The notes under the pieces are model-generated. The model had not been told where the DNA came from and ran no database searches. It worked only from the letters and a program-made list of their open reading frames with translations. The position numbers and the translations under genes were made by a program. This document shows positions 4,353-49,506 of a stretch of DNA of 64,000 nt, one piece after another. Position 1 is the first letter of the stretch. Each line of letters starts with the position of its first letter. Origin of the DNA: Schizochytrium sp. TIO01 (lineage: Eukaryota; Protista; Bigyra: Labyrinthulomycetes); NCBI GenBank assembly GCA_004764695.1, contig SMSO01000025.1, positions 3,782,001 through 3,846,000 of the forward strand, written 5' to 3'.

Positions 4353-4379
4353 GCAGCAGCAGCAGCAGCAGCAGCAGCA
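4353..4379. repeat. (GCA)n microsatellite
   Basis: Directly visible trinucleotide run of about 9 units. Confidence 0.9.
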
Positions 4380-6420: not shown

Positions 6421-6528
6421 TTACTCGAAGCAATGTATCTTATTATCTTACACGAAGCAATGTATCTTAGTATCTTACTCGAAGCAATGTATCTTATTAT
6501 CTTACACGAAGCAATGTATCTTAGTATC
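6421..6528. repeat. Minisatellite: 4 x 27 bp arranged as 2 x 54-bp dimers
   Basis: TTACTCGAAGCAATGTATCTTATTATC and TTACACGAAGCAATGTATCTTAGTATC alternate as A-B-A-B. Confidence 0.95.
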
Positions 6529-10868: not shown

Positions 10869-11069
10869 CTTCAACCATGGGAAGTAGTTACGTGCAAAAT
10901 AATCTAGGTTTTCAAACCCATATTATCAATCCAATGTATGTATCAGACAACGAAAAGCCGAAAAAAAAAAGTCAATAACTACTCACAGAATTAAGTAAAA
11001 GTACTTCTAAAGCCTTGTTTGTTTATCTCTTATTAGCTTGGTCTTCGTTCAAGGTTAGGGTCACGAGGC

Positions 11070-23540: not shown

Positions 23541-25246
23541 TTAGTAGGCACCAACGAGGCGGAGGAAAGGTGTAGCCTGCTTAAGCTTTTCCAGCGAAGC
23601 CTGCAAGGCCTCGTAGTTAAGCTGCTTGCTCTCAATCTCGCAGAAGAAGGCAAAGTCAGAAGCAGCACCAGCCGGCTGCGGCATGCTCTCGAGGCAGGAC
23701 AGGTTGACAGCATCCAGGGCCTTGAGAGCCTCCACAAGAGATCCAGGGCGGTGGGCAACTCCGAAGAAGGCCACCACGTGAGACTTGCCCTCACTGAGCG
23801 TAGACTCAACAGGACTGATGACATAGTAGCGATTCCACCTGGACTCATCCTCGGGATCTACAAAGTGAACAAGACCGCATACCTTCAGGTTCGAAGCAAG
23901 CAGTGCGCGCTGAGTCTCCTTGCAAAATCCAGTGGAAGATCGCTGAATGGGCACGAGTCCAAAGCCGACTTGGTTACGGGCTACTGCGAGGAATGCATCC
24001 TCGATGCTGGAGCAAGACTTAAAATCGTCCTCCTTGACGTCAACGAATCGAGTGCGGGCAGCTGCGCGGGCAAGATCGTCATCAGAGCTGACAATAGCCA
24101 CTGCGGGACGGTCCAAACGCTGCAAAAGGTAGTCTACTTGCACATCCTTGTTGAGAGGAATGAGATAGTTGCGGTAGAGACGTGCGATGACGTCAGGGTC
24201 AACCTTGTAGCCCATTTCTTCGGAAGATGCACCGTCCGTACCGTAGCGAGAGGCCTTAGTGCGAACGCGCTCAACAACAGCATCCTCAACAGTGATGTTC
24301 GTGAGAGCGTCCATGATTCCTTCAGCGTCGTTGGCCTCGATCATCTTTGTGAAACGCTCGCGCTCAGCCTGAAACTTGGCCTCTGCAACGAACTTACCAT
24401 AGTGGATGCGCTTAGAGAGAGCCTGAAGTACGGCAATGTCACAGGTACAGGTAGAGCCATACTCGCCATCATCATCGACGTCACCGGTGGCGCAAAGCTC
24501 ATCAAGGATTTTGGACACGTAGACATTGCTCACCTCCTTGTTGATGTTGATCATGTTCGGCTTGAGTGGACTCTTCTTCGTGCTGGCAGTGACAATGCTC
24601 TTGGGCAAAAGGTCACCGAAGAAAGCATTCTCATCAGGACTGTTGTAGCGTCCGAGCTTGGCATGCAGAGTCTCAGTCTCCACGAGGAAGTGTTCCATGA
24701 AGCAGAGGTCTTGGGCAAGAGGTGTGGCACCCTGGGCCATCACACGGGCACGAAGAACCTCAGACTCGCCCTTCTCATAGCATACGCGGTTACGTGCAAA
24801 CTGCGAACGCTCGATAAGCGCAAAGATAATGGTCTCCTCCTGGCGGATGAGAGCACCGCGGATGTCCGCGAGCTGTTAACATTTAAATAAATTCAACATC
24901 CGTCACCACCATTATGAACGAAGTGCAACCATCGTTCATCGGTTCGTTCGTCGCGAAAATACAAGTATTCGTTAGTCCAAAGAGATTGCCAAAGAAACCA
25001 TATTTGACACGCAAGCCTCCGAGAGTCATCAGCAAAACTAAAGAATTTATCTCGGTGCTTTGCATAGATAATCACCAAGCTACATCACCAACATCCTAAA
25101 GGTCTCCATGATTTCAGCTTCTCACACCGAAGCCGCCGCTTTGAACCCTCACGACTTTCGAAGTGTGATCTGCGTGAAAATGGACAACACAAGCAACCTG
25201 GTTAGCTTCGATTGAGCTAGCTTACCTTGAGCGGGAGCGTCTCCAT
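23541..25246 (-). CDS. Eukaryote-type (Aro7-like) chorismate mutase fused to a truncated prephenate dehydratase-like domain and an ACT domain; exons 25246-25226 and 24872-23541; 450 aa
   Basis: A 21-nt exon METLPLK|GTAAGC...AACAG| joins LADIRGALIRQEETIIFALIERSQF. Also RYNSPDENAFF, LQALSKRIHYGKFVAEAKF and LIPLNKDVQVDYLLQRLD (CM hallmarks). Then SIEDAFLAVARNQVGFGLVPIQRS (PDT N-lobe) and HRPGSLVEALKAL..NLSCLESMP...LRLVGAY (PheA-type ACT). Confidence 0.92.
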
Positions 25247-26549: not shown

Positions 26550-29500
26550 CTAATTTTCTTCTAGACTGAGGTTCCCAAACATGTCAGCATCCAGATCTTC
26601 CTCGTCTAGATTTTGGCTTGCATTGTCTCTAGGAGAAGTAGAATCTACGATACTTTCCCCGTTTGTTTGCACAGTTTTTGGTGTGTCAACTGCTTTATTC
26701 GTTCTTTCAGGAGCAACGTATTTTTCAGACGTCTTAGTTTTATTGTTGGCGATTGGAGATGTCAAAAAAGGAATTTTACTTTGGGCTAATGGGGTTGGGG
26801 TCGACATCCCAAAATCAATGCTAGCCATGATGGCATCTACTTCTTCCTTACTCTCAAGTATACTCAAATATGGGGGGGCAAAAGCTTCGCTCTTTTCTAC
26901 TTTATCTGGCTCACCAGACACCAGATTGGGATCATTGGTAAATGCAATCGGTCTTGTCGTATTAATATCAGAGTCAGAGCCACCAATTTCATCATCCTCA
27001 GGTATACAAAATTCTGAAGAACTATTATCCCCATTGCTTATGATATATTTAGTGTGCCTACCAGCCGGGGAAGCTGCAAATGGGAGTTTGTTTTTGGCGA
27101 GCGGGGTTGGTGTTGTCACACCAAAATCAATACTCTCCATGATAGCATCCACAGTATCTCCGTCCTCATCCTCAAAAATGCTCAAAAAAGGAGCATTGTC
27201 AGAATTTTGATGGATCGTTGGCAAATTTACATGCGCAGGAGAACCAGGGAATGCAAATGTACTTTGAGCAAGTGGAGTTGGTGTGCTCATTCCAAAATCA
27301 ATACCTTCCATTATTGCATCTACATCAGCGTCATTGTTTGTAAACGAATCAAGATATAACGGCTCAGGTATATCATCCGGTTTTTCTTGACTGCTATTCT
27401 CTTCATTAAGGCATGCATTGATATCTAACTTGTTTTCTGACAAGCCTTTTTGAGAACTCTGAGCGCTATTCAATTTAGGCTTCGAAAGATACTTCTCAGC
27501 AAATTCGATCTCAGTCATTGCTTTGACTTGATCCTTGCTCCCGGTTTCGTTAAATGGTGTTACTTCATTTGAAGGATCGTCGGTCGTCCCCATAGCGCAG
27601 ATAACTTCCCAATCTTGATTCTGATTAATGTCTTCATCCGATTCAATTGCATTGGTTTTTAGATTTATCGACAAAGTTACATTAGAGTCCGTAGAAGCTA
27701 GGAGAGTGTGGCTTGTTGAAAGAAGCGGAGCTTCATGAACTTTCGCGAGAGTATCCACATGAGGGAGTCGAACCTCCTGTAAAGGGAATGCTTTTTTAAT
27801 AGCCGACGAATCGATACCATCTAGCATCCGAGGGGTTGTAGAACTAGACAGATCCTCCTCAATATGAACAATTTCATCAATCTCTGCATCCACAGAATAG
27901 TTTTGACCCATAAAATTATCTAAGTGAGCAATCTTCTCTACCGAGTCATGAGATGCATTGCTGAAACGTCGGACAGGCTGACCGGGCACGATAGGTTCTA
28001 TTTTATGTTTAACCACAGAGTCATTTTTACCTGGACTTGTTGGGTCTAACGCCGAATCGACATCCTCCCAGTCATCCTCAAACATACAAAGACTTTGTTG
28101 CTGTGATTCTCGAGACAGTGTGCAATCTAAATCAATCTCATCAAACAGTTGATTATCGCCATTACTTTCCTCCGACTTTGTCGAATTCGTTTGTAATTGA
28201 CTGCCCGGTGAAGCTTGCTCTGTGGTAAAATCCACCACCCATTTTCTGTTTACCAGCTCGGAAGACATATGATTCCCTTGAGTACTCACAAAAGCTTCTG
28301 TAGCTGTATTGTTTGCCATTTTTTGACTTAATTGGTTCTCATCAAGGCTATCCTTGGCTTCCGCATGTTGCATAATAGATGTAGAGGCCTCTGGGACGTC
28401 GCCCGTAGTCCCAGCCAGCGCCGTTTGTTGACTTCGACCCTCCTTGGGAGCATGCAGCGGTAAGCTACTTTCAAGTGTAGATGATCGAGAAGAGTGAACG
28501 CAACTACCGGAATTGAATAGTTCTTGAAGTTCTACGGGGAGCCCGGCAATCTCTTCCGCCCTCTCTTGCGCTTTTCGTTTATCCTTTTTGACTTGTAAGT
28601 CTTTGTTTTGTAGTTCTAAGCGGCGATTGAAGGAAGCATGACTCTTTATGATAAACTCAGTACGCTGATCATATAGTTGCGACATCTTTTCTACACGGTA
28701 AGCATCAGCGTTTAGACTTGCCTCATAACGAGCTTGTGCAGCTGCTGTTTCAATCGCAGCAGCAATTTGTTTCTGCTTCCTGCTTTTCATAGATTTTTTA
28801 GAAATGACAGACACTTTTTTATTCCCTGCACGTCGTTTTGTTGGCAGTTTCTTAGAAGTTTTGGTTGATAACTTTGTAGATCCCATTTGAGATGTAGAGT
28901 TTCGATCTCGTGCTTTCGGCGGAGCTGACCGAGGTCTTCGGCGAGTATTTGCCATCTCCATGACGAAAACTGGTTGGTTAGGGATAACTTGGGATGATCT
29001 CTTAACCTTGAGATCGCGAAACGCTTCTAGAATAGTTGCGTCATGCCCCCAGCATTCTAGTCGATGATGCCGAGGGGAATCAGTTCCACGTCCATTATCT
29101 TCATACGATTCAGCAATTTGGATGCCTCGGATATTGCGAAGCTTCGTCCGTGGTGTAATAGGGAGAGAGTCTAGGGAAAGAAGCAAAGTCATTGTTTCAT
29201 CAAAAACTTCCTCTAGATCACACGCCTCGTATAGCCTTCGAGATTTTTCATATGCTGTTGGATTCACATGTTGGTGAAGAATAGGAATTCGGTGAATGGT
29301 GGGGCCTTTCCTGCCACTAGAATATGGTCTTTGTCGTTGATTATGTTCAACAAAACCTTGTTCTTTAGAGTCTATGTGCTCCTTTTTCTTGTGTTCAGAG
29401 CTTTGTTTGGGCTTGGTTGTGGAGAAGTTAATCTCTGGTGACGCTTTTCGCTTCTTGGGTTTTTGGCGTGCAGCACTACTGCACTTTCCATCATGGAGAG

Positions 29501-29666
29501 TTTTTTTTAAAGTAATTGCTGACTTTGCAGGAGCTGTGCTTGTTGTTTCGTAGACCGCCATAAGAGTTGAATCTTCAGCTTGCACATCTGAGCGTTGAAG
29601 ATCCTCGAGCCAAGCTCTGGCTCGCAGCAGAGACATAGGATGGCCAACAGCAGCTTTGGCCACCAT
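26550..29666 (-). CDS. Hypothetical, largely disordered protein with basic N-half, short coiled coil, acidic C-half and three ~40-aa repeats; 1038 aa
   Basis: 3.1-kb uninterrupted ORF from ATG. Repeated motif VDAIMxxIDFGxxTPTPLA occurs three times. No family recognised. Confidence 0.8.
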   Translation of the reverse strand: MVAKAAVGHPMSLLRARAWLEDLQRSDVQAEDSTLMAVYETTSTAPAKSAITLKKTLHDGKCSSAARQKPKKRKASPEINFSTTKPKQSSEHKKKEHIDSKEQGFVEHNQRQRPYSSGRKGPTIHRIPILHQHVNPTAYEKSRRLYEACDLEEVFDETMTLLLSLDSLPITPRTKLRNIRGIQIAESYEDNGRGTDSPRHHRLECWGHDATILEAFRDLKVKRSSQVIPNQPVFVMEMANTRRRPRSAPPKARDRNSTSQMGSTKLSTKTSKKLPTKRRAGNKKVSVISKKSMKSRKQKQIAAAIETAAAQARYEASLNADAYRVEKMSQLYDQRTEFIIKSHASFNRRLELQNKDLQVKKDKRKAQERAEEIAGLPVELQELFNSGSCVHSSRSSTLESSLPLHAPKEGRSQQTALAGTTGDVPEASTSIMQHAEAKDSLDENQLSQKMANNTATEAFVSTQGNHMSSELVNRKWVVDFTTEQASPGSQLQTNSTKSEESNGDNQLFDEIDLDCTLSRESQQQSLCMFEDDWEDVDSALDPTSPGKNDSVVKHKIEPIVPGQPVRRFSNASHDSVEKIAHLDNFMGQNYSVDAEIDEIVHIEEDLSSSTTPRMLDGIDSSAIKKAFPLQEVRLPHVDTLAKVHEAPLLSTSHTLLASTDSNVTLSINLKTNAIESDEDINQNQDWEVICAMGTTDDPSNEVTPFNETGSKDQVKAMTEIEFAEKYLSKPKLNSAQSSQKGLSENKLDINACLNEENSSQEKPDDIPEPLYLDSFTNNDADVDAIMEGIDFGMSTPTPLAQSTFAFPGSPAHVNLPTIHQNSDNAPFLSIFEDEDGDTVDAIMESIDFGVTTPTPLAKNKLPFAASPAGRHTKYIISNGDNSSSEFCIPEDDEIGGSDSDINTTRPIAFTNDPNLVSGEPDKVEKSEAFAPPYLSILESKEEVDAIMASIDFGMSTPTPLAQSKIPFLTSPIANNKTKTSEKYVAPERTNKAVDTPKTVQTNGESIVDSTSPRDNASQNLDEEDLDADMFGNLSLEEN

Positions 29667-30172: not shown

Positions 30173-30464
30173 TTATTCAAAGGTGAAGAAGGTTTCACTA
30201 TCTTGAGAAGGAGGGGGCAGAAACTCACAACGAATCATACAATCCATTGCAACTTGGCTCAAGACCTCTCGAGGTGGATAATTCACATCAATCAGAGGGT
30301 CTACTGCAAATCTGACACGACAACTTGGCTCCATCGCACCTGCGTCTGCAGCAAACATCGGGAGAAGAGGATGAAGAGCATTTGCGGGCTCATCCTTATC
30401 CAGCACTGCAGCTAATTGACGTCGGGATGGCGGTGCTGCATTTGACGACTTTGACGAAACTGCT

Positions 30465-30495
<31 letters not shown>

Positions 30496-30539
30496 TAGGG
30501 CCAGATTCTGCACGTTTCAAAAGATGCTGCTGCTGCTGC

Positions 30540-30587
<48 letters not shown>

Positions 30588-33500
30588 TGCTGGGATGGAT
30601 CTTTAGCCTGCCGCAGAGTCTGTCCTAACAACGAGGCTCGTGGCTCTAACATTGGAACGGATGTAGAAGTCTGGAAAACAGAGACAGGCTTAGAGGCCAG
30701 AGAAGACGATGACGCTGTGGTAAACGGAGCTTGGCCACTTACGCTATCAGGATATGACTCGTCATCTGATGACGAGGAGGAGGATGAAGAGGATGTCGAG
30801 GTAGCTGACACGGCACGAGCTGGGTGGTCGAGGGGGCCACTTAAGTCACCCTCGGCATGCTCTCCAGGAGGCTTTTGCGTAGCAACACCTTTAGATTCAG
30901 AATCACGCACATTTGCTCCAACAGCTGTCTGCTCCTTGACAGCACGAAGCAAGCGTCCTCGCCAATCTACATAGGGAATCAGCTCACAATTAAAACCTGT
31001 GGAAGATACCCAGTCAAAGTACTCAGGAAGGTACCATGGGTCGGGATGACACATGTTGAAAGCGCGTCCCTCAACTTGCGAATGGGCCTCCGGAAGGGTC
31101 AACAACTTTATCATCGCGCGACATACAAAGTCCACCGGATTCATATCCATTACCCAATCTAAAACAGGCGCTGCTTGAAGCTGTAGGCAGCCCTTGAGGA
31201 AGAGACACATAAAATCGCCAAAACTTGCCATACCAGTGACAGAATGACCAGTAATGCGACCAGGTCTAAAAATGCATGTAGGAAGACCGCGATTTTGAGC
31301 TTCACGAACAAGATGCTCTGCAACCCATTTGGTTTGTGCATAGCCTTCAAGAAGGTGAAGGTCTTTACTGTCTGGGAGGGGGGCATCCTCGGCAAACTCA
31401 ACAATCTCTTTATTTTCTGGGCTTGTTTTAGACTCACCATCTGCACCATGAGGAGGTGCAAAAACAGACAGAGTCGAGACATGTAGCATATTAATGCGCC
31501 TGTCCTTTCGCGCGCATGCCAAACGAAGAACCTCCTGAGTACCACCAACGTTGACCGCGCGCAGACGTTTGTAGGGGAAGAGCGAGTGAACATAAGCTCC
31601 AGCATGGACAATCACATCTAGCTCTTGCGCTATTCTCTCAAAATCGTGCTTTGGCATTCCGAAGCGTTCCATCCCAAGATCTCCACGAAGCACCAAAATA
31701 CGCTGTTGTTGCTGAGTTTGCTGCTGCTGAGGCGTCTGAGTTTGCTGCTGCTGTTGTTGTTGAGATTGGAATGATTGTTGAGACTGAGTTTGTAAAGATT
31801 GCTGCTGCTGCGAAACAACGTCCCCAGCACTTGACCAATCCAAGTGAGAATCTTCAAAAGTGCCTATACTAGGCATGGTGTCTTCAGTGTAAAGATTGAA
31901 CTTCAGAAAGATCTCTCGAAGTTTCCCAAGTGCTTTTGATGCACTATCTGCCCTAACTAGGCAAACGATTGTAAGCTCAGGACGGCTTTCAGCCAAGGTT
32001 TCCAAAATTTGATGCACAAGGAACGCACCGAGGAAACCTGTCGCACCAGTCACAAAGATGCGTGACCACGTGTCAGGCAAACTCTTATCAAGAACACTAC
32101 CTTCTTGTGGGCGGATGTCTTGATCAAGAATGCATTCAACCTCTGGGTCAAATCCAAGAGGATAATCCACATCAGGGGTTGGCGCGGTGTTCGCTCGTCC
32201 GGCAGAATCTCCACCTTCAGTGCGCGCCGCAACAGCAGCGGCCATACCTTCAATAGATGGGTCAGCGAAAAAGACTGAAATCGGCAGGTCTACACCAAGG
32301 TTCTCTTGGACCATCGCAAGCAGCTGTGTAGCTGCAAGAGAATGCCCACCAAGATCGAAAAAGTTATCATGGATACTAATTGACTGTAAACCCAGCGTTT
32401 CTTTCCACAGGTCTGCGATAACAACTTCCTCCATGGACCTTGGCGCAACAAGAGCTCGAAGTGCTTGGCCATGTGCATCATGGGCACTTTCTGTAGGGGG
32501 TGGTAGGGCCCGACGATCAATCTTACCATTTGCTGTTAATGGTAGTTCGTCCATGAAAACCCATGCAACAGGAACCATATATGAAGGAAGTTTGTCCTTC
32601 ACCAAACTCTGTAAAGCGTGGATTCGCTCTACTTCACCATAGGTATCTTCTTCAGATTCTGAAGAAATAACAACGTAAGCACATAGTCGCTGCTGACCAG
32701 GCACATCCTCTCGTGCAACGACACACGCTTCAAGAACACTAGGATGCTGCTTAAGAACTGATTCAATCTCGCCTAATTCCACGCGCATGCCGCGGATTTT
32801 GACCTGAAAGTCAACACGACCTATGAACTCGATATTGCCGTCGCGTTGAAAGCGCACACGATCTCCAGTACGATAGAGCTTAGAACCCTTCAGATAGGCC
32901 AGTTCAGGTGTGTGCTCTACAATAGCAGCTATTGATTGAGGAAAATCAATGAATCGATCTCGCGTAAGCTCAGGACGGCCAAAGTAGCCGCGCGCAAGGC
33001 CAGGTCCTGCAATGCAGAGTTCTCCCGCGACCAGGGCGGGGACTGGCTCAAGGAACTCGTCAAGAACGAAAGCTGCAAAGTTATCAAGTGGTTTTCCAAT
33101 GCATGGGGCCAGAACAGCCTTTTGGTTCTGTAGTCCCTTGGTCGATAGAAGGAGTGAGTTTGTGACAAAATAGGTACACATAATTGTACCTTCCGATGGC
33201 CCATAATGGTTATCCAGACGAAAAGGCACAGTGGAAAGGACATCACGAGGTACGTGCAGTTTATCACCACCACCGTACACAACGCGAAGGCTTGATGGCC
33301 ACTGCTGTGAAGTTGATGACTTTGTACGTAGAAAGACCTCTAGAAGCGGGGTGGGGAGCAAAGAGACCGTGATGCGGTCATTATGAAGACATGTGCGCAA
33401 TGCATGAAGATCCTTCTTTTGCTCATCCTCAACAAAGTGCACGGAGGCGCCCACTGAGAGGAAAGGCCAGATCTCAAGACCAACAGGGTCAAAGGCTGAG

Positions 33501-36500
33501 CCGACAAGCTGTGAAGCACGGTCTTTGTTTGAGAGTTCATAAATTCGAACATGCCAGTTGATGAGATTGACCATCGATCGATGCTCCACGAGAACGCCTT
33601 TGGGATTTCCAGTACTCCCTGAAGTATAAATCATGTATAACGTGCTACGAGAACCATGCCATTGCTGAGCATTTGAGCCCCATGACGAAGAAGCTGGCGG
33701 GGGTAAATTTGTCACTGCTCGGATCGCTCCAAACGCTCGCTCAACCTTACTTGCAATGCGATCCCAGCGCAAGTCAACAGGAATAATTAGCGGGAGATTT
33801 GGGATACTCTCGAGGCCCTGATGGCTTAACAGTTGCAATGAATGCCGATCGCAGAGAAGAACACGCATCTGCGAATCCTTGAAAACATAGGTAAGGCGTT
33901 CTTGCGGCCAGGAAACATCCATAGGAACGTAAGCGCCTCCAGCTTTTGCAACAGAGAGCATACCCAAAATCATGTTGGGTGAACGCTCCATAAACAAGCC
34001 CACATTCACTGAAGGTTCAACCCGACAGCGGTAACGCAAGTAGCGCGCAAGCATGTTTGCTCTTGCATTCAGCTCGCCGTAGGTCCAAGTCCTACCTCGC
34101 CATGCCACAGCGCATGACAAAGAATTAGCCTCTGCACAGGCTTCGAAGAGTGCGTGTACACATGTGAACTGATCAAAGTCGCGCTTGGTTTGGTTCCATT
34201 CGGAAAGAATGAGCCTTTTTTCAGACTCGGTAAGAATTGGCAAACGACAGTACAAGCCTTGCGGGTTTTCCGCGCTGCCGTGGATTAACTGCTGCAAGTG
34301 GTCAGCGAAGCGAAGAATGGTGTCTTCGGCAAACAGCGCAGTTTTATACTGTAAGCCAGCACGGAGCCCACCCTCTTCTGTTTCAGATTTGGTGATGATC
34401 AACTGAAGGTCATAAGGCGATGCTTCCTGAATAACATCCCTGCGAAGTTTCATTTTTAAATGCGATCCAACCGTAACGGTTTCTCCAGACTCAAGCCGCG
34501 CCAACGAAGGCGTTTCTTTAGATTCAGCTGAAAAGGATTGATTAAGCGACAAGAGGACCTGAAAAATAGGGCTACGTCCCGCACTACGGTGAGCAGCCAT
34601 TTTCTCAACGAGAACAGCAAAGGGGTACTCTTGATGCTCGAATGCAGAGAGGACAACAGTTCGGGCTTGCCTTAGCAAACTACGGAAGTGGTCCTCCTTA
34701 CTTACGTGCATGCGTAATACGACAACATTTGTGATGTTTCCGACAGTACGATCAAGTTCGGGTACAGTGCGACATGCCATCGGAGTACCAATAAGAATAT
34801 CCTCTTTCCCGGTGTATCGATACAATAGACCAGCATAGAAGGCCACCAGTGCCATGAATAGGGTTGCACGTTCCAGGTGTATCGCCTCTTGCAGCTTAAC
34901 TAAACTTGCTGCGTCCAGATCAAAAAAGTGCCAGGCTCCGTCTCGAGTTGATACGTTTGATTCTTGCTGTGCTGAAGAAACTATAGACTCCGTGGGATCA
35001 GATTCCACAGGAAGGTCAAGAGATGCTTCGTGGCCAGCCAGCTGGCGTTGCCAAAAACTCCATAACCTCGAACCGGCTGAAGAATTCATTTCCTCTTTTT
35101 GTAACTTCGCAAACTCCGCCACAGTCATTGTTGGCTGAGAAGGCCGCACAATTGATGTTTCAGATACTGCAGCATCATACATTTCACCAAGATCCTCCAA
35201 TAAGACATCAAGTGACCATCCATCCATGGAAATATGATGAGCAGTAAGAAGCAGAACCGGGTGTTTGTTACTATCAACAAAAAGACGTGCTCGAAACGGG
35301 GCATTCCGAGTCAAGTTCCATGGACGATGCAGTTCTGCTTGCAAGAGCTCATGTAATGTTTCTTCGGAAGCTTGGGGATCCATGTCCGCGACAAAGTCAA
35401 CCTTGTTGGGCGCCAAAGCATCCCCATCATTGTGGACATCATTGTCATTATCGTCCTTTGCTTCGGACACTTCCAGATGTAACTTGGAAGGGACTTCATC
35501 TTGCTTCGAGGTGAGTGGAGGATAAACGATCTGGTATGGAACACCGTTTTCTTCTCCATACATTGTGCGCAAGGAAGGGTGGCGATTCACAAGCCCTTGT
35601 AGTGCAGTACGAAGATACCCAACATCTACTATCTTGTGTTTTTCATCTTGATCATTTTCTTCGAATAAAGCTTCGAGTGTGCAACAGACATGGACTACAT
35701 AGTCGACACGCTTGGGATCCATTTTATGCATGAACCAGAGAGATTGCTGATTGTATGAAAGAACACAAATTTCAGGTGTTTTGCCGGATGAGGATGGTGC
35801 AATGTTTGCTTTCTTAGTGGCTGCATTGAGCTTTTGAAGCCTTTCTTGCAACGCTTGCTGAGCACGCATGCTTCCAGACCACATTGGAGTATGAGCCATG
35901 GTCAATGGTGTCGTGAGATATTCAGAGTCCATCATCTGGCTATTGGATGAAGAACCTCCTTGATGGTAGCCACTTGTGTTATCAGACTCGAGAGAACCCC
36001 CAGGGTGTTGAGGGTCAGAAGATGGAGTCTGACCTTCTCTCACACGACGTAATGTTGATGATGTGTGCGATGTGGACAAAAGGCTTCCGCGCTCCTCTTC
36101 TGTGCGTGGGTAAAGACTTCCGACACCATCCCGACGGGCAGGTGCACGCCTTTCTTGAAGCCACTCACTAATCCCTGTATCGCGCAAACTTGAGGATACG
36201 AAAGAAGTGGAAAGACGCTTTGTTGTGGTAGGAGCACCAATAAGGGCGCCCTGGGGTGCTCCGTTGTTTTGATTTTGAGAACGTGATGAAGGTCCACGCA
36301 AGCTACTGCGCATGGAGAATGCCTGCGGTGTAGGACTAAAACGAACTGACGGGGTCTCGTAAAGACCCTTGATCTGAGATCTTGATCCACTTGGGGCGCT
36401 CGCACCGCCAGCACCTGTAATGGGCGTTTTTGCTTTAGCGGAGTTGATGTACATGACTACAGATTTTAGAGTCGGGGACTGAAGAAACTTCGAAAGGGGC

Positions 36501-39500
36501 ATATCAATGCCAAATTCTCCACGTAGTTTGCTCATCATACGCGCTGCTGATAAGGAGTGACCACCTTCTTCGAAAAAATCCATAGTTGCTTCCATTTCAT
36601 TCGGGTTTCTCCCAAGGGCATCGGCGAAAATCTTACGAACGGTTTGCGCAAGGTCCGAACTAACATCAAGTCCACGTATAGACCTGGATCCAACCGTTGA
36701 CCCAGAGTCACGCCGCTTTCCTAAGGACGTCGATCGAGCCGTGCCCTCCCCATCATCGGCTGGTTTACCTTCTTTCTTTTCCACAGTTTCTGAGGCTTGC
36801 GGATCCGGTAAAGCACGACGGTCAACTTTATGATTCTGAGTGAGCGGGAAGGCTTTTAGGAAGACGATCATACTTGGAACCATGAAGTTTGGAAAACAAG
36901 CACCTAAGAATTTGCGAAGGTCTGACGAAGTGGCTTGAGTACCCTCGCGTACAATCACATAACCAACGAGGAACTTGTCGCGGTCGCGCTGGCGTACGAC
37001 CACAACGGCTTCTTTCACCGAAGGATGCTGCAGCAGCTCTGATTCGATAGCCACAAGCTCTATGCGGTTGCCTCTGATTTTCACCTGTGTATCCCTTCGC
37101 CCCATGAACTCAACGTGACCATCCTCACGCCAGCGCACGAGATCGCCTGTTCGGTACATACGTGGATAGTCCTTCAATATGGGTGCAAGATCAGCAGCAA
37201 GGTCCTTAGGGACCGGCAGAAAACGCTCTTTGGTGAGTTCAGGGAGATTAAAGTAGCCACGTCCAACTTGAATACCAGCGATAAAAAGCTCTCCAAAGAC
37301 ACCAATAGGTAAAGGTGTAAGGTGCTCTTGATCTAGAATTAAACAAGCGACACCCGATGCAGGCTTGCCGATTGAAGGAGGTTCTCGCATACCTGGAGGA
37401 ACTGTAGTCATGGTGGCATTAACAGTGGTTTCTGTTGGACCATAGATATTCACCAGACGATATGGGGCATCTGAGCGAGTTCCAAAGTGCAGACGGTCTC
37501 CACCAGTATAAATGAGACGCAATGCGCCAAGCTTGGCACGAGGTCGCGCAGAATCCTCTTCGAGAACCATTTCGCAGAGTTGGGTAGTGAGGAAACCCAT
37601 ACTTACACGGTTTTCGACAACCCAATCTAGAAAACGCGGTGCCACAACGCTAACATCTGAGTCCGTGACCGGTACCAAACATGCTCCGACAGCCAGAGTA
37701 GGCCAGGTGTCAGCAATAGACGCATCAAATGCTAGTCCGGCACAGGCGAATACCCTATCCTCTTCCGTCATTTGGTAGTATTTGATATGCCAGTGAATGT
37801 AATTCACAATAGAGACATGTTCAAGAAGCACTCCTTTGGGTTTTCCGGTTGATCCAGATGTAAAAATAGCATAAGCAAGCTGCTTGCATGAATGACGGGG
37901 GTCATAAATCTGAGTCTCACTTGCCAAGGAAATGACATTATCCCAATCTCGATCAACGACAATTTGCCGACCCTCAAAGCTTTCCGGAATGCCTTGCACC
38001 AAAGAGGCCTCTGTGAGGATTACAGTTGAATTGGCTTCGTCAAGCATGGTTCGAACACGTTCCGGAGGATACTTAGGATCCATTGGCATAATCACGCCAC
38101 CAGCTTTTAAAATCGCAAGCCACGACACTGTTAGATGAGCAGTACGAGTCATGAAAACTGGAACGAGCGTTTCATGTCGAACTCCTGCAAAGCGCAAAAA
38201 GTTGGCCAAGCGGTTTGACCGAGAGTTCAGTTCTCGATATGTGAGTACCATAGAAGGAGTTTCAACACAGATTTTGTCTGGGGTCTGTGCTGCTTGTCTC
38301 TCGACGAGCTCATGTATTGTAGCCGTGCTGACCTCGGGTGCGGGGCGGGCTTGGTTGAAATCAAACAGAATATGCTTACGCTCCTCTTGAGAAAGCAGTT
38401 CAAGGTCAGAGATATGCAGCCGTTCTGGCTCAGATGCTGCCACTTGCTCAATAATTAATTGCAGACTATTGATAAGTCGAGTCATTGATTTTTCACGAAA
38501 GATGTCCGTGTTGTAATGAAACGAGGTCGCCAAGCGGTCGTCTTCTAGACACATCATCAATGTCAAGTCAAATTGAGCATGTAAATGCGGGCACGTAAGC
38601 GACTCCATTTCTGGAACTCCTTCGCCAAAGTTGAGCTTGACCCCGTCAAAACCAAGCAAGGTTTTGGCCAAACCAGGTCGCTTTACATGGGGGCGCTGTA
38701 ACACAAAAGCAACATTAAACATTGGGTTCTCACCAGTGCTACCACTGCTTTGTCCAGCTCCTGACCGGGCTAATTGTTCAACGAGGTAAGGGAATGGTAA
38801 TGCCTGGTTATCAATGCCACGAAGCATCACCGCAGCTACACGGTTCCAGAGCTGAACAAGTGTAGGATCACCTGAAAGATCTGCGCGCACAACGATAGGG
38901 TTCACAAAATAACCAATGATCTTTTCAAACTCCTCACGCCAGCGTCCAGCTGTGGGGACACCAAGTTGTATGTTGTTTGAGCCGGTATATGCTCGAAGTA
39001 CTATGCTGAAACAAGAAAACAAGATAACAGACAGTGTAAACCCGGTCTTCGTACAAATGTCCACAAGTTTCTTTGTGTTTTCAGTTCCGAGTTCAAAGCG
39101 CAAAGCGGAGCCACGAAAAGACTTTACTGCAGGGCGAGGGGCATCGAGGGGCAGTTCCATGTTGTCTCGAGAATTATCATCCCTGTTTTCCTGAAGCTCT
39201 TTCATCCAAAAATCAAGAAGACGCTGACCACGAGGGCCTTCAATGAGACGATGCTGCAGAGCGATGAAGTCTTTGTAGGTGAAGTCAGATTCAAGTGCAT
39301 CCGGCGGGGTGGGGTTTCCACGGTAGGCGTCCATCAACCTATCAAGAATAAGGACCATGCTCCAAAGGTCGGTGACAATATGATGAACAACAAGAAGAAA
39401 AATTTGGGTTCCATCCGGGAGATTTGCGAGACGAAGACGCATTAGAGGACCATTGGCAAGATCAAAGAGCTGGTATGTTTCACGACTTAGCCATGATTTG

Positions 39501-42500
39501 ATGGTTTCCATTGAATTAGAATTCAAATCTTCCTCTGACATGTCAACTTTTGCATCAAAAATTGGAATAATGACACGTTCCACAGTGGCATCTGCATGAG
39601 TAGCAGGGATATATTTCGCGCGTAAGGCTTCGCTATCTCTAGTGATCTGTTCAAGAGCTCTGCGAAGCTTCTTCGGATCGAGTGTATTCCCAGGCGTAAG
39701 TCGACATGAGAAAGGAACGTTGTAAGCCTTGCTCGCCCACTCATTTTGGGCTTGGCAAACCAGCCACAATGATTCCTCATTAAACGACGGCATATCGTTA
39801 TAGTCATGGACAGGAAGTTCATCTCCTTCATCCAAAATATCCATATTCTGAGGAAAATCACTTCCCTGAGATGCTTGTGTGCTGGAGTTCCCCAGAGTAG
39901 TTGCTGCGGCATGACAGTACGCCTCAAGCCGAGGAAATTTGTATAAAAGCGAGACAGGAACGTCTGTGTGCAACAGACGACTCATTTGCGCCGTTACACG
40001 CCCAGCACCCAAAGAATCACCTCCTGCTTCAAAAAAGTGCAAGGACCTTGGGTTTGCATGTGACGAATCCTGACTGCTGAGACCCAAAGCTTCACAGAAG
40101 ATTCCCCACATGTTGTCTACCAAAGCGCTATACTTTGTTTTGCCATCGCTCTTGCGCTCAACTTGCAAGCGAATGTTAGAGCTTGTAGGCCCAGATGGCG
40201 AATCCTTGCCACTATTATCAGAACCCGCCGCTCCATCTGAGGAACCATGACCCGTCCCCGGTGCTGGAAGACTTCTTCGATCAACTTTGTGATTTGGTGT
40301 GAGCGGAAAGCTTTCCATCTCAACAAAGGCAGAAGGTACCATAAAAGACGGAAGTTCTGATGCCAGGCTAGCTCGAATCTGACCAGCAAGTACACCCGGT
40401 GCCTCATCAGTAAAATTATCCTTGGCGATAAAGTATGCTACAAGACGCTTATTACCTGGTGTATCTTCACGTGCAATAACGATAGCTTCTTTAACTCCCT
40501 CGCATGACAGCATCGAACTTTCAATAGCCGTAAGTTCGACACGGTTTCCACGAATCTTTACTTGGGTATCAATTCGCCCAAGGAAGTCAATCTGGCCATC
40601 AGGCAGCCAACGGCAGAGATCACCAGTACGATACATGCGTGTCGTTCCAACATCAAACGGGTTAGAGATGAACTTTTCTGAAGAGACCTCAGGCATGTTT
40701 AAATAGCCTCGAGCCAGTTGCACGCCGGATAGGAAAAGTTCGCCGTACACACCAACAGGCACTGGCGTAAGCGTTTCTGCTTCAAGAATGAAACATTGGG
40801 TGTTTGGAGCGGGCGATCCAATTGATGGAGGAACACGCAACCCCTCTGGAACATAGCACATTGTTGAGTTGACTGTATTTTCTGTGGGACCATAAATGTT
40901 TACGAGCTCGTAACGGGCGCCCATACGTGTGCCCATGTGCAATCGATCACCGCCTGTATAGACGAGCCGGAGAGTTCGCAGATCTTGGCGTGGGTGTGAC
41001 GCATCCTCCTCAAGGAACATTTCACAGATTTGGGTTGTCAGAAAACCCATCGTGGCCCTTTCACGAATGATCCACTCAATAAGACGGGGCGGGACAACCG
41101 CAACATCAGGATTGACAATCGGAAGAAGACAAGCGCCAACAGAAAGAGTAGGCCACGTGTCTGCAATGGAAGCATCAAAAGCTAGACCTGCACAAGCAAA
41201 CACGCGGTCATCTTCAGTCATACGATAGTACTCAATATGCCAACGAATATAATTTGCAAGAGATCCATGCTCTAACATTACACCCTTGGGTTTTCCAGTG
41301 GAGCCACTGGTGTAGATTACATAGGCCAGGCTAGATAACTTCGACTGGCGCTCCTCTGCAGATGGAGGGGGCGGAGGTTGGCGACTGCCTAGCTGAATTG
41401 CACGATCCCAGTCGCTGTCAACGTTAACAAGGCGCGGCGAGGTTCCCGCAAAAAGATCTTCAAGACTCGACTCTGTTATGGCTATTTTCGCATTCGCGTC
41501 TTCTAGCATGACCTGGATACGGGATGCGGGAAATTTGGGATCAGTCGGCATAATCGCACAACCTGCTTTAAGGACAGCAAGCCACGCAACAGTCAACATA
41601 GGTCCGCGGTGCAACAGGACCATTATGGGATCCTGTGGTGCAACTCCAAGAAGCTGAAGAAAGTTAGCTAACTGATTTGCTCGTGCGTCAAGCTCACGGT
41701 ATGTCAAACTTTCACGGCCTCCATGGGCAGAAATTGCAACTGCATCGGGGGTACGTTTGGCAGCACGCTCAACAAGTTCATGCACACAAAGGTCTTGCAT
41801 GTCTGGAGCAAAAGTGCGGGATGTCTCATTGAATTTACGTATAACGAGGTCTTCCTCAGCGGGGGGGATAATTCGAAGGTCTGAGATGCGGGCTTCAGCA
41901 AAGCGTTGAACCACATCTTCCAATAGTGTTTGAAGGTGTACACCCATGCGCGCTACAGTATTTTCAGAAAGCGCGTGCATATTGTAGTGCAAGGCTAGAC
42001 GGAACACGGGTGAAGTAGTACCTACGAGTCGTATATCATCTGTACATTTCTCTACCATGAATTGGTGGGGAATGGGTTGCATTCGCACGCCACCAAATGT
42101 CAGTGGTTTGCTGAGTTGCTGCTGAAGCTGATAGGAGGCAATCTGAGAGGTGTCCATGGAAGAGAGCACGGAGGACTGATCATCCAGCCTACCATCCGAA
42201 CCGATCATGCTCCCTTGTTCAAGGCCCAGCACAAAACGCATTACTCTGGAGCTGATCAGTGGTAGGCCATAGTCCTCAACAATGTTTCCATACATTTCAA
42301 CGCCAGCGGAGTATATTGGTTCTGAATTGTTTCCAATTGCCTGAAGAATTTCTGTAAGGGGAACATCAGCATTGTTTTCAGCATCAACAAGAGCCTGATT
42401 CATGCGATCTGAAAACTCTCTCATGGATGGGTGATCTGCACTTTGTACGCGGAGAGGAACCCAATTTTCAAATGAGCCTACAATATTCTTCAATTCTGCG

Positions 42501-43309
42501 TGCTGTGTCCTGCCAGAGATATGACAACCAAGAATGATGTCTGTTTTGCCCGTATATTTGGAAAGAAGAGTATGGAAGGATGAGATTAGTAGCACGCGTA
42601 AAGAAATGTGTTCCTGCACAGCGAGTGTGCGAAGTTTATCGCCAAGCTCTGGTGGCAAGTTGATCACCGATTGTGCAACAAGGTTCTTCCGAGGTTGCGA
42701 GCTTGTTGAAGGCAGTGTGACAGACGGGGCCAATGATCGAGTGCAAGCCGGTTCTGGCGGAAGTTCCAGCTTTGGAAGTGGTCCTGCAAGTTCGTGTTGC
42801 CAAAAAGACATTTGTGTGTCCTCTCCCGAAGCTTTCACAGCTTCCCGTTGTTCGGCGCGCCATGCTTTGTAGTCTTCATACTGTACCTCGAGCGGCGAGA
42901 GAGTAAAGCTGATGCCTGATTCATACAGCAACTTCACATCCGAAATGAGCAAGCAAAATGACAAGGGATCCACAAACTTTCGGTTGGCTAGCATCGCTAG
43001 GATATCTTTGCCAGGGTAGCATCTTATGATACGAACCACGAGCACATGGCTTTGGTCTGGGTCGCTGAAACTAACATCTGCAAGATTGTTTTGCACAATT
43101 TCCGAGTCGGATTTGCCCTCAACGGCCTCGGAGTCATCAACCAGAATACGAAAATCAAGCTTTTCAGGTCCTGCTAGCAGCGCCTGCCGCTCACAGGCTC
43201 TCAGTATACTGCTTTCGAGCGCCTCGGCATCCAGGCTCCCCACGCTCGACGCCACAAACTGCACCACAGAGAGGCCCTCTACGCCGCGGTTCCCGGCGAC
43301 CTCCACCAT
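30173..43309 (-). CDS. Trimodular non-ribosomal peptide synthetase C*-A-T-C-A-T-C-A-T-R (terminal thioester reductase), about 4380 aa; true start may lie upstream
   Basis: Three A domains (Y/FTSGSTGxPKG, YGPT/SE, YRTGD, QVKIRG, A10 Lys). T domains FFEAGGDSL (~40015), FFEEGGHSL (~36555), FFDLGGHSL (~32340). C motifs HHIVTDL (39365-39385) and HHISMDG (35220-35240); degenerate NRKFVDP in C1. R domain with VTGATGFLG and YAQTKWVAE. First ATG is at 43309 (the ORF track starts at GTG 43342). Confidence 0.97.
30464..30590 (-). repeat. CAG/CAA runs encoding polyglutamine tracts in the NRPS C-terminus
   Basis: A poly-Q run of more than 20 residues and one of about 10 residues are visible in the translation. 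Confidence 0.9.
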
Positions 43310-46199
43310 CGTGTCGTGATTGCCACGACGGCTCTGCGCCACGCTTGAGACCCCTGGCTCACTGAGGAAGGGTGTCTACGCGCAAACGAGCTGCCGGCAC
43401 GCAGCAAACTCCGCTCGGACCCAACCTCGGTCCCAGTTTGAATCTATTTAGTTGAATTCAGGTTTGGATTTGGATTCGGATTTCTGTCTTTCTTTCTTTC
43501 TTTCTTTCTTTCTTCGCTCCTTATTTCTGCGATGTATTTCTTTTTTATAAAATCAAAAAAATCAACAAATTTTGAACAACAAATTCAAAAACTCATCATC
43601 AGCTCTTTAAGAGAGACAGTGGGCAAGCAGCCAGCCCCAGGCCAGGCAAGTGAAACAAATTTACCCGCAAGTAGGCTATCCGCATAGCCTACAGTGCCGC
43701 AAGTGGAACAAACCGCGCCACAAATAGAGTATCGAAATGCTACCGGCGCTAGCCACTCTCAGAGGCAGCAGGATTCCTTCTTTAAGACTTGAGACTCACA
43801 GAAGGAGGACTCGCCAATGCGCGAACGAATCGCTTGCCGCTGCCTGCCTGCCTCCTGTCCTTGTCCACAGGCCGTGTCTGCTCTTCGCGGACGATGCCTG
43901 CCTGCCTGCTGCCCGCCTGCCTATGTCAAGGACCACGATCATGATGACATGACAACGTCTATCTATCGATCTCTCTGTTTCGCAAAAAGCAAGAAATCAT
44001 AGCCTCGCCAAAAAGGTTGATACAGGTTCGGGGGTCATGCATTGCATTTATATGGGAAGCTGCAGAGCTTGTAGTAAAATCTGGGCAGCGTGGGAGCACG
44101 CGAGTCAAGGCTCTCTTCGAAGCTTTGGGCTACAAATCGAAAGGAGCTCCGCTTTCGAGGCCGCGCAGGGCCGGCAGTCTGGCCGGCGCGCGGGGGAAAG
44201 GGGCGGCGCGGGGACCTGCTCTCTCCATCTCGCCGATGCCGACGTGGCAACCTCCGTCGGGCAGGTTTCGCGGAGACCAGCTCCAAGCGCAGCGAACCAG
44301 ACTCGATGGACTGACCTCGAAAGACCCGCCATAGTATACGTACTCACTCACTACAAAGAAGAGCGAACTTATGGGTCGGGGAAAGCGCACACTATCTGCG
44401 CATCGGTCAGCTGCAACTCTTTGCCTGGAGAGGCTGCGCACGCCATTGGGCTCCAACGCTCGGCTGAAGGAGCTTCTTCTCGCGCCGATGAGACATCCGT
44501 AGCATTGATCGGTTTCCTGAGCGAAATATAAAGTTGCTCGAAATCTCGTGCTGGACATATTAGTTTTGTCCCTATGCGTGGTTAAGTTTTCGTGGAGTCA
44601 CTTGTGAGATATGTGATAGGCTTTCTCTTGTTCTCTAGCTAGAGCCGCTCTGATGTATTGTGATGTCGATATGGGAGTGTTGCTTTCATTCTGGGAAATA
44701 AGGAAATGACAGGAGTTGTTCCCGCAAGATATGTTATAGTATTCTTGTCCTGGTCTAAGCTAGTGCTAACGCCTTAGTGCAAGTTTTGCGTCAACTAAGA
44801 AAACTCAAGGTTCTCATGGGACGCCTTGCTACGCTTGACCTTTGCGCGGACTCCGTCTTGTCGCTAGCTATCTACCATTTTCGGTTGCTTCGAAGTGTGG
44901 CATTGTGCTGTTGTTGACCAAGCTTGACTTGCTACTTTAACCTTATCGAGCAACACCCTTTAGAATCGTTAGCATAACTTAGATATTTCAATTTGTACTT
45001 TACCTTTTAGTGGAGGCACACTCTGCGATCCTTACTCTAGAGTTATGTTGCTCGCCAAACTCTTTGGCCTCTAGCTGAAAATATGAGAATTGACACCATT
45101 AAAAACTGAAAATCCCAAAAGGAGTGGAGGAGGAGAGTCCGTGTTCATTTGATGTTCAAGAATCTAATCTGAAACCTTATCTTCAAGGGAACAAGACTGA
45201 AGAGGAGATAGCCCCTGCAACTACCTGCGTAGGTATCTAGACTAGGTATGGCGCTACTTTTCTTGACCACAAAATGCAAGAGAAGAAACCATACCAGCTA
45301 GGTGCGTAGTAGTAGCTTCGATACCTAGTAGTTTTTGGCCAAGTCAAAGGACTTACAGGAATAGTCTTACCTGCCTATGTTTTCCCTTCCTACTACATAA
45401 AATACCTGCTAGTTGCAATCGGACAGGCAATCAAAAGCCCAGGTTGTTGAAAGCAACCTGCTTCGTAGCAAGTTTGCCAAAGTCTTGCCACATAGGAGGA
45501 TAGCACTAGGTATACGGGCTTCCTGAGTGTGCCCCTCGAACCTTTTTTTCTCTCTTCCCCGCGAAACCTTGAATTTGCTGTGTTTTCATTTCACTGAGTA
45601 CATCGATCTAAGTAGGTGCTACGATGCTACGAAGAAGGTGGGTTTCTTCGCATTGGCTCCTTTAAGTTCCCTGCAATTTCTCCGCGATTAGGTTGCACCA
45701 AGCCTGGACACGTCCCACGTGCAACTTGTTCTCACGGTTTTCAAGGGTCTGCAGTGCGGATATGTACCTAGCTAGCTAGCTATCAACTGGTAGCACAACT
45801 GAGTCCAGCCTGTCCGCGAACTTGAAGAAACGAGAGTCAAGAAAAACGAGGGCAAACGACAGTGATGGGCCCTCAACGATAAGAGAGTGAGTGCCCTCTA
45901 GAGTAAGACACAGCTTTCATATATGCGGCCTTTTGGGTTCATGGTCGGACCCTATAGTATCCTCCTCAGTTTTACTCCGCCGCGCGGATAGTTGATACCC
46001 TAGAAGGTACCTAGCTAGTACACCCATGAGACTTGAAAGCAAGGGAACTTGATGTAATGTTATTTTTGGAGTGTAATCCGATTGCCGCCAAATCCAGTAG
46101 TCTGCCTGTATCATACCTCCCCTGAGGAACACGCGAGGTGGGCGCATTCGTAGGCTCTAATTCTGTTTTGTAGCGTGTTTTGCGGGACCAGTGGACAAG

Positions 46200-47674: not shown

Positions 47675-49506
47675 TTACTGGCCAAACTTGGAGAACAATT
47701 CTTGGCCTGCGTGCCAAGTGCCAATCACGCCGAGGATTGAGCCAACAATGATAACAAAAATATCCACTGCTGCGGCGAACTTGGAGATTTGATCACCATA
47801 AAGCTTCAAGTGAAAATATGCTGGCAGAATTAGAGCAAGGAGGGCACATGCGCCCGCGCCAACGAGCGAGATAAAATCACCAAAGTTAGGGATACCAATG
47901 GCAATGAAGACAGCGCCAAATACCACAATTACTCGAACTAAACTTTTGACCCATTGAGACCGACCAGACAGAACAGAGGAGCTTTCGATAATCTATGATG
48001 TGTTGCAAAGGATTCAATAAAACGGTAGAAGAAATATGATCACCCACCCATACCACACACGCATTGGAATAAGGCAAATGTTAGTCTTTTGATACAAAAG
48101 GAGCAGATTGTCATCATTTGAGATGATGTTCCTATCAATGAAACAAGTCATGTGCTTATGATGGATAAACTTACCGTATAGACAGGGAGCATCATGAGCG
48201 GGAAGGTAAAGAAAAGGCCTGTCGAAAGTGCAACCTTGACTATCTTTGTCGGAATACCATCACCGAGATTGAGCGTGATGATTTCTTTTGTACTATCAGC
48301 ATAGGCAATGTAACCAAGTGACCCAAAGACAATATAGACTGAAGTAACCATGGCCATGGTAGTCGCAAGAATGCGACGAAAATGAGGTTTGTTCTGCATT
48401 GACTCATGAATGTTGAGAATAACACCGACACCTTCATAGCAGTAAATAGCCACGCCAAAAAAGTAAGGGAGATTAGCGAAAACAACCCCAAAAATGACAT
48501 TGCTCAAGGCATTTTCCATATGGAGTTCGTGCTCATGAAAGACCTCTACGTCAAAAGAGATAACTACGAGCATGCCGATAATGTTAGCTACATCTGCCAC
48601 GAGCGCAAATGGAGAAAGGTTCTTGATATGGCGATAAAGAGCGAGCAGTGAGAGACCAGGAATCGTGAGCAAGATGATAGTACTGTTGCTAAATTCGGGC
48701 ATGACTGTGTGCATATTCTCACCAATAAAAAGGACGTATGCACAACAAAAGGCCACCTGCGTAAGTACAAGTAAGAAGTCAATGATTACAGAGCCGGTGG
48801 GTCCGAGGACGCCGTAAGCAATGTCACCATAACCACGTACCATCTTGCCCTGTTGTTGTAGCTGTATCTTACAGTCCACCAAAAGCATCATGGCATACGT
48901 AGACATTGTGCCAACAAAGCCAACGACCCCGATGGAACCTAGGAGACCTGTTTTCATGAAGGCGTATGGTAAACCAAGCACGCCAGCTCCTACAAAGGAG
49001 ATGAACATGTGGGCCGCTGTGGACCGATCAGAGTTGAGAAGGGTTGTGGGGTTTGCTTCATCAGATGAACCCTTTAACTTCAACATGTCTTTGCCATCCT
49101 TACTACCACCGTCTTGGCTCGCACCATCCGGATCGAGAGCATCCTCTTCGCCATAGCTTTCATAAGAGTCATCATCTCCATCTCCTTTTTCCAGGTCATC
49201 GGGATGCTGGGACCCGCTTTTAGATTGTGATTTCTCGTAGTTGTCAGCAGAGTCAAAGCTGTCTTCATAATCTGAATCCTTTGCCCTAGATTTGTTTTGA
49301 CGCCATGAATCCTTAGTTGAGTTCCAGGACTTCCTAGCTGTGTTGCCGTTTTCATCATTTTCGTTGGCGCTGTCGGAGTTGAGCTTGTGATGCTGTTGAA
49401 CCTGCTCATCCCCGCTGACCTCACGCAACTCCACCCCGTTCTGGCTTCGTTTGCGAGCCGGTCTTCGGGCGTGCTGACCAGGATAGTCTTCCTCCACATC
49501 GAGCAT
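47675..49506 (-). CDS. Amino acid transporter, Aa_trans/AAAP (SLC36/Avt3-like); exons 49506-48175 and 47992-47675; 549 aa
   Basis: HMFISFVGAGVLGLPYAF, FFGVAIYCYEGVGV, GLFFTFPLMMLPVYT|IIE..., IPNFGDFISLVGA...LILPAYFHL. GTAAGT..TAG intron at 47993-48174 keeps the frame. Long acidic N-terminal tail. Confidence 0.93.

Follow-up and report, generated by a model that had tools for sequence, protein, structure and literature searches.

In the 64,000-nt stretch of Schizochytrium sp. TIO01 DNA analysed here (the window, C24:3782001-3846000), the minus strand carries a trimodular nonribosomal peptide synthetase (NRPS) that ends in a reductase domain, and it can be considered, with a probability of about 75%, a functional, host-encoded, single-exon thraustochytrid enzyme working by a scheme of five steps. 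The three carrier domains (T1, T2 and T3) would be primed by a genome-encoded phosphopantetheinyl transferase (PPTase) of the Sfp/AASDHPPT type. Then, as suggested by their specificity codes, the adenylation domains A1 and A2 would load the same α-amino acid X on T1 and T2, and A3 would load a residue Y on T3. Following the canonical NRPS logic, the condensation domains C2 and C3 would form two peptide bonds, resulting in an X-X-Y thioester on T3. The reductase domain (R), belonging to the short-chain dehydrogenase/reductase (SDR) type, would release this peptide with NAD(P)H through hydride transfer, as an aldehyde, or as an amino alcohol if it is reduced twice. As the N-terminal condensation-like domain (C1) would be devoid of condensation activity, the peptide would probably keep a free N-terminus.

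Domain organisation of the synthetase

The open reading frame (ORF) covers positions 30173-43342, with 4389 codons counted from a GTG. Its first ATG, at position 43309, lines up with the N-termini of the homologues in the alignment and gives a protein of 4378 aa, encoded by 30176-43309 and followed by the stop codon at 30173-30175. As seen by the ORF list, the translation, Pfam and the motifs, this is a complete coding sequence in a single exon. Pfam recognises Condensation, AMP-binding, AMP-binding_C and PP-binding domains three times each, together with a C-terminal NAD_binding_4 (E 6.9e-60), and the NCBIfam adenylation model TIGR01733 matches three times, reaching 1167 bits against a cut-off of 317. 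The domain order is C*-A-T-C-A-T-C-A-T-R, where C* stands for the degenerate C1, and the motif scan finds every core motif intact apart from the active site of C1. An uninterrupted 13-kb ORF with this order, intact carrier serines, A10 lysines, two HHxxxD motifs and an SDR-type R domain had been described in the initial annotation, and all these elements could be located; the description has to be completed with the minus strand, two insertions in the R domain and, between T2 and C3, a linker of about 200 aa.

All domains lie on the minus strand. The first module begins with C1 (residues 1-470; 41900-43309), where NRKFVDPLS replaces HHxxxDGxS, followed by A1 (residues ~500-1015; 40265-41812), which was delimited by Pfam and PDB matches and bears the code DAAFYGIVNK, as read by motif anchoring and by alignment with its clan of homologues, and by the T1 carrier (39905-40117; S1099 in GGDSL). 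The second module is formed by C2 (residues ~1170-1640; 38390-39802; HHIVTDLWS), A2 (residues ~1650-2170; 36800-38362), which shares the code of A1 and is 53.6% identical to it overall, and the T2 carrier (36440-36658; S2252 in GGHSL). The low-complexity linker, rich in serine, glycine and glutamine (35795-36424), was recognised in the translation and shows 34-50% identity within the clan. It leads to C3 (residues ~2510-3035, with the best Pfam stretch at 2516-3034; 34205-35782; HHISMDGWS), then to A3 (residues ~3050-3605; 32495-34162), delimited by Pfam and bearing the code DPLLYGHIMK by code alignment, and to the T3 carrier (32225-32437; S3657 in GGHSL; Pfam PP-binding at residues 3631-3693). 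The terminal R domain occupies residues ~3745-4378 (30176-32077).

Regarding the catalytic motifs, the three A domains possess intact A3, A5, A7, A8 and A10 motifs and the features of type I NRPS adenylation domains, including Asp235 and Lys517. The A3 core motif reads YTSGSTGKPKG at residue 666, FTSGSTGKPKG at 1816 and YTSGSTGNPKG at 3228, and the A5 motif is NIYGPTE in two of the domains and NHYGPSE in the other. The A10 lysines are found in HKVDR at residues 1007 and 2160 and in GKIDR at 3595. Each A domain is followed by one carrier domain bearing its serine, and the HHxxxD motif is present in both condensation domains located between modules, as HHIVTD at residue 1309 (C2) and HHISMD at 2691 (C3).

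The R domain sits directly after T3 and resembles solved R domains over their length. Its best solved structure is that of MxaA (4U7W; E 4e-56), and the R domains of carboxylic acid reductases (CAR) and AusA are also matched. The motifs TGATGFLG (residue 3754), STLS (3945-3948) and YAQTK (3990) are invariant in the clan. Two low-complexity stretches interrupt the domain: a poly-Q tract at 31700-31864 (residues ~3816-3870) and a serine- and glutamine-rich region at ~30410-30937 (residues ~4125-4300), the latter containing a CAG repeat at 30525-30592, as detected by the tandem-repeat scan. In an orthologue from an environmental contig (L016), the R domain is compact, with 416 aa aligned to the 420-aa MxaA chain; thus, both stretches can be understood as insertions in a complete domain. 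From these similarities, the R domain should release the peptide reductively, as an aldehyde or an alcohol.

Host origin, family and probable transcription

The assembly comprises 64.07 Mb in 37 contigs, and the NRPS gene lies within a contig of 5.8 Mb, surrounded by eukaryotic genes encoding myosin head-ankyrin-FYVE, TANGO2, DnaJ, Aa_trans, tesmin-CXC and PH-ankyrin proteins. Its GC content (0.487) and GC content at third codon positions (GC3, 0.427) are close to those of the myosin gene (0.490 and 0.427), and the correlation of its relative synonymous codon usage with that of the pooled neighbours is 0.88. The NRPS is a host gene. The setting among intron-containing eukaryotic genes noticed previously is consistent with these neighbours, as at least the Aa_trans gene is divided into two frames. 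This transporter gene (47675-49536, minus strand), located about 4.4 kb upstream of the NRPS start, has its frames at 48148-49536 and 47675-47926, pointing to an intron of about 200 nt. Immediately downstream of the NRPS, an ORF of 1038 aa (26550-29666, minus strand) is of low complexity and without a Pfam match, and has three copies of a VDAIMESIDFG(M/V)(S/T)TPTPLA-like motif near its C-terminus.

A profile search of the whole genome found Condensation matches in this NRPS alone, namely its three. The candidate priming enzyme is encoded at C31:8409475-8410287, as a 271-aa protein with AASDHPPT_N and ACPS domains and the features of an Sfp-type PPTase; two other loci with PPTase domains exist in the genome, and no MbtH gene was found in it.

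Among 5.8 billion proteins, the best match is GBG31706.1 from Hondaea fermentalgiana, 66% identical according to BLASTP and 69% when aligned. The other family sequences, at 45-52% identity, are CAK9099421.1 (P0002), two metagenome proteins and a pair of MMETSP transcripts (P0092 and P0124). In all, the architecture recurs in five sequences besides the window protein, with identities of 45-69%, giving a family of six, and the domain order is the same throughout, except for P0018, whose gene model starts inside A1. The clan is recognised by xRxxxDPLS in C1, HHIxxDLWS in C2, HKVDR in A1 and A2, NHYGPSE in A3 and YAQTK in R. P0002, P0004 and P0018 match an A3-T3-R query contiguously through the R domain. 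In the whole-protein search with this query, summed scores rank giant multi-module bacterial NRPSs first, and the fragment searches with A3-T3-R or C1 alone gave no further clan members. In CAK9099421.1, an LCM-type methyltransferase follows the R core (residues 4137-4274), where the window protein has its low-complexity insertion; either a genuine fusion or an artefact of the gene model would explain this.

Additionally, a scan of metagenome contigs gave at least one clan locus, L016. As the neighbours of its orthologue share 62% and 70-82% identity with proteins encoded in the present genome, L016 can be attributed to another thraustochytrid. Together with the Hondaea homologue, this agrees with the thraustochytrid origin proposed in the initial annotation. 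On this contig, the start of the synthetase (C1-A1; 2186-3832) and its remainder (3825-13487) are in two overlapping frames of the plus strand, reflecting a frameshift or an assembly error, and an aminotransferase class I/II gene, convergent to the NRPS, follows immediately downstream.

The nearest A domains beyond the clan are bacterial and 40-44% identical, and the bacterial R domains retrieved by motif pattern, mostly from cyanobacteria, show 29-41% identity. When bacterial and archaeal genomes of 185,579 species were searched, none contained the clan-specific A1/A2 motifs. Judged from these relationships, the assembly line is of bacterial type, old and domesticated in its host, and the donor cannot be named.

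The NRPS stretch is contained in 20 public runs from seven studies, and four runs from four studies were compared over 39000-44900. In each of them, a single contig of 12,861-13,006 nt follows 39000-43454 colinearly and without joints, ending between 43436 and 43585. The segment 43310-43585 (minus strand), with a TTTC repeat at 43481-43514 inside it, is thus a probable 5' untranslated region. The adjoining intergenic stretch is uncovered in two runs, and a third has there only contigs of 200-240 nt, with a depth of 2.4-3.6 against 75-84 in the flanking regions. By arithmetic, the other contig end falls near 30576, within the CAG repeat, and the total assembled size of the runs is 31-40 Mb against the 64-Mb genome. 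The shape of the contigs, the contrast in depth and the assembled size are the reasons for reading the runs as transcript assemblies, so that transcription of the NRPS is probable; the expression check proposed in the initial annotation is thereby answered with transcript-like contigs of about 13 kb in four public runs. Moreover, the MMETSP transcripts of the orthologue indicate that the family is transcribed in another species. Comparing the strains over this part of the gene, 21 coding positions differ, 17 of them synonymous and four non-synonymous, which argues for purifying selection on the gene.

With this evidence, it is highly improbable that the NRPS stems from bacterial contamination or a very recent transfer, or that it is a pseudogene in decay. 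Such an origin would fit a gene without introns, whose domain relatives outside the clan are all bacterial. However, the gene is embedded in the 5.8-Mb contig amid eukaryotic genes, and the agreement of its GC, GC3 and codon usage with the host, together with the eukaryotic flanks, excludes contamination or a recent transfer. A chimeric or contaminant contig had been named beforehand as what would overturn the finding, and the length of the contig, the codon correlation and the GC3 shared with the myosin gene all point the other way. The frame is also intact across 13 kb, under purifying selection as seen in the strain differences and with transcript-like contigs, and it holds poly-Q and serine-rich insertions of eukaryotic style. 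Furthermore, the identities to bacterial A and R domains are low, and the clan-specific motifs were found in no bacterial genome of the 185,579 species searched. The host-encoded, functional enzyme is the reading retained below.

Predicted product and weighing of alternatives

The codes were read by core-motif anchoring in the PheA numbering, and as a cross-check the same columns of the alignment gave back the canonical codes for Ser, Thr, Val, Gly, Leu, Phe and Tyr. Throughout the family, A1 and A2 share DAAFYGI[V/I]NK, with a single Y-to-F change in one A1, and A3 has DPLLYGH[I/V]MK. In a FastTree of the A domains, read without support values, A1 and A2 form one clade and A3 another, and within the first clade the two modules are separated in most members, suggesting that the duplication of A1 and A2 is old. 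We infer from the codes one amino acid substrate, X, common to A1 and A2 and a different one, Y, for A3; the product is likely to be a conserved X-X-Y tripeptide released by reduction. The extension of this prediction to the whole protist family (six sequences, at least in thraustochytrids), as the maker of one conserved tripeptide aldehyde or alcohol, possibly with unusual residues and with a core physiological or ecological role, is tentative, and the balance tips slightly away from it. On this view, the gene is maintained by purifying selection and apparently expressed under ordinary culture conditions. If true, the product could act, for example, in protease control during osmotrophic feeding or in signalling, and Labyrinthulomycetes would have their first natural product of NRPS origin.

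Some points weigh against the functional, reductively releasing synthetase and its predicted tripeptide. That the runs are RNA is a guess, simple repeats, at which DNA assemblies may also break, lie at both contig ends, and the 3' 400 nt of the NRPS lie outside the contig cover; nevertheless, the depth contrast of 20-30-fold and the uncovered intergenic stretch favour RNA. Concerning the substrates, neither the A1/A2 nor the A3 code matched among 1283 A domains of collected NRPSs or in the literature searched, and we know of no canonical code equal to either; consequently, neither X nor Y can be assigned to a particular amino acid. For the R region, the AlphaFold2 model, built on an alignment of six rows, is of low confidence, with a mean pLDDT (predicted local distance difference test) of 51. 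Finally, a two-electron release as aldehyde and a four-electron release as alcohol are not distinguishable from the R sequence, and MxaA, its best structural relative, yields an alcohol.

The N-terminus of the product depends on C1, which reads NRKFVD at residue 109, where HHxxxD would be expected. C1 matches positions 142-338 of the Pfam Condensation profile, and its best solved structure is the C domain of TycC (2JGP; E 8e-17), where mhhsisDgvS is aligned to lanrkfvDplS. The second histidine of HHxxxD is the catalytic base. By homology, C1 is a true relative of the C fold without the catalytic histidines, and its condensation activity is most likely absent in all family members; the product N-terminus is therefore probably free. 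The pattern xRxxxDPLS is kept in every clan member that includes C1, and the strain differences within codons 18-370 comprise 13 synonymous and no non-synonymous changes. As the domain is both conserved and constrained, a structural or docking role is probable. The same constraint, indicating that C1 does something, and its presence at 35-64% identity in every clan member that includes the region could also be explained if the domain were still active or recruited a trans-acting partner, giving an N-acylated lipo-tripeptide aldehyde of the fellutamide type, and lipo-initiation by N-terminal C domains is indeed common in bacterial NRPSs. However, this is unlikely, as the second histidine is an arginine in all members with C1 and the first is replaced by N, D, L or R. 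In addition, C1 is nearer to elongation-type than to starter-labelled C domains, in a reference sample that is mostly of elongation type (71% labelled LCL, by position), and no acyl ligase or acyl carrier gene stands beside the NRPS among its neighbours in the window or in L016.

An even less probable alternative concerns the nature of Y or X, as a chorismate mutase gene (23541-24872, minus strand; CM_2, partial prephenate dehydratase (PDT) and ACT domains) lies two genes downstream of the NRPS, and both could form a cluster supplying an unusual residue derived from prephenate, of the BacA or SalX type. The adjacency is repeated in Hondaea, where the gene model fuses the NRPS to CM_2 and a partial PDT (residues 4514-4706), the gene context in that species being deduced from the fused model alone. 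However, this gene has the only CM_2 match in the genome, which makes it most likely the housekeeping chorismate mutase; its PDT match covers profile positions 14-74 of 181, and a full-length PDT is encoded elsewhere, on C31. Moreover, in L016, which carries a more distant orthologue, the NRPS is accompanied by genes for an aminotransferase, an asparaginase, a glycosyltransferase and a TPR protein, with no chorismate mutase gene, and adjacency in two fairly close genera may be retained synteny. Given the sole chorismate mutase in the genome, the full PDT elsewhere and the different neighbours in L016, the adjacency is read as synteny rather than as a cluster. No conserved gene cluster was found around the NRPS when the window, the Hondaea model and L016 were compared. 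Of the peptide-aldehyde pathway proposed in the initial annotation, the R-terminated NRPS stands, whereas the word pathway is tentative, since only one gene is conserved, and so are the release as aldehyde rather than alcohol and any activity as a protease inhibitor. The synthetase acting as a single conserved gene, with a probably unacylated tripeptide as product, remains the preferred interpretation.

Comparison with known systems and significance

Thraustochytrids such as Aurantiochytrium, Schizochytrium and Hondaea are grown industrially for docosahexaenoic acid oils and feed, and the host is believed to be transformable. Aurantiochytrium limacinum has the qualified presumption of safety status of the European Food Safety Authority (PMC11261301). 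In the literature searched, thraustochytrid secondary metabolism is covered almost exclusively in terms of polyunsaturated fatty acid and polyketide synthases (PKS). Thraustochytrid genomes have been surveyed by antiSMASH for NRPS genes (PMC6050695), and this survey, the one relevant report found for thraustochytrids and NRPS, does not describe the present gene. Likewise, neither a characterised orthologue nor a paper on the gene was found in the literature searched, in line with its earlier description as uncharacterised. The gene thus offers a one-gene target linking to a possibly bioactive peptide aldehyde or alcohol, with relevance to natural-product discovery and to the knowledge of what production strains make, and it joins the well-supported examples of bacterial-type assembly lines that are old and fully domesticated, here in a heterotrophic stramenopile.

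Among related proteins, the Hondaea orthologue GBG31706.1 has the same C*-A-T-C-A-T-C-A-T-R order and codes, and is named 'ACV synthase' by NCBI and 'chorismate mutase' by UniRef, both automatic names for an uncharacterised protein. True ACV synthetases end in epimerization (E) and thioesterase (TE) domains. An identity as ACV synthetase was rejected, as the enzyme lacks E and TE and ends in R, its A1 and A2 share one code and the codes are unlike those of ACV synthetases. Regarding Lys2/α-aminoadipate reductase (TIGR03443, A-T-R), the A3-T3-R part aligns with 975.8 bits; this score is summed over six stretches and lies below the cut-off of 1030.1, and an assignment as the lysine-pathway enzyme was set aside, the protein having three modules and C domains with intact motifs. 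Position 236 of the A3 code is a proline, which we take to be a feature of aminoadipate-activating A domains. The MxcG equivalog was also discarded, with 1190.4 bits against the NCBIfam cut-off of 2300.

Two further genes of the genome encode reductase fusions. About 0.66 Mb from the window, C24:4506959-4510828 (plus strand) encodes a 1289-aa NRPS-like protein with A-T-R and a second short-chain dehydrogenase (A-T-R1-R2). This layout is also that of the fungal ATRR glycine betaine reductase. The diatom PtNRPS1, reported in a 2026 paper to turn tryptophan into tryptophanol (PMC13194791), has the A-T-R1-R2 order as well. The other, at C36:767750-771604 (minus strand), encodes a 1284-aa fusion of a fatty-acyl/thioester reductase domain (NAD_binding_4), an acyltransferase and GPAT_C, possibly a bifunctional enzyme of ether-lipid or wax synthesis.

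One of the closest known systems to the synthetase described here is AusA, the aureusimine/phevalin synthetase of Staphylococcus aureus (A-T-C-A-T-R), which likewise has a T-R end releasing a short peptide aldehyde, and the NCBIfam AusA model is the second-best overall match, with 1255.6 bits, far below the equivalog cut-off of 2500. However, AusA has two modules instead of three and is devoid of an N-terminal C-like domain. Its dipeptide aldehyde cyclises to a pyrazinone, which a tripeptide need not do. MxaA, the R domain of myxalamid synthase, has the same Rossmann and Tyr-Lys motifs as the NRPS R domain, although their identity is moderate and the two long low-complexity insertions are found in the NRPS; MxaA stands at the end of a PKS/NRPS hybrid, and its reduction involves four electrons. 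Among solved structures, LgrA matches the A domains best (E 8e-183, a sum over two A domains). LgrA-D and the fungal fellutamide and peptaibol synthetases resemble this NRPS in being R-terminated and colinear, with reductive release; they are bacterial or fungal, much longer or lipo-initiated, and their products are known. Compared to these systems, the type of enzyme is well known, and the added interest lies in a family conserved in thraustochytrids and possibly in other protists, in its codes without a known match and in its conserved but dead N-terminal C domain.

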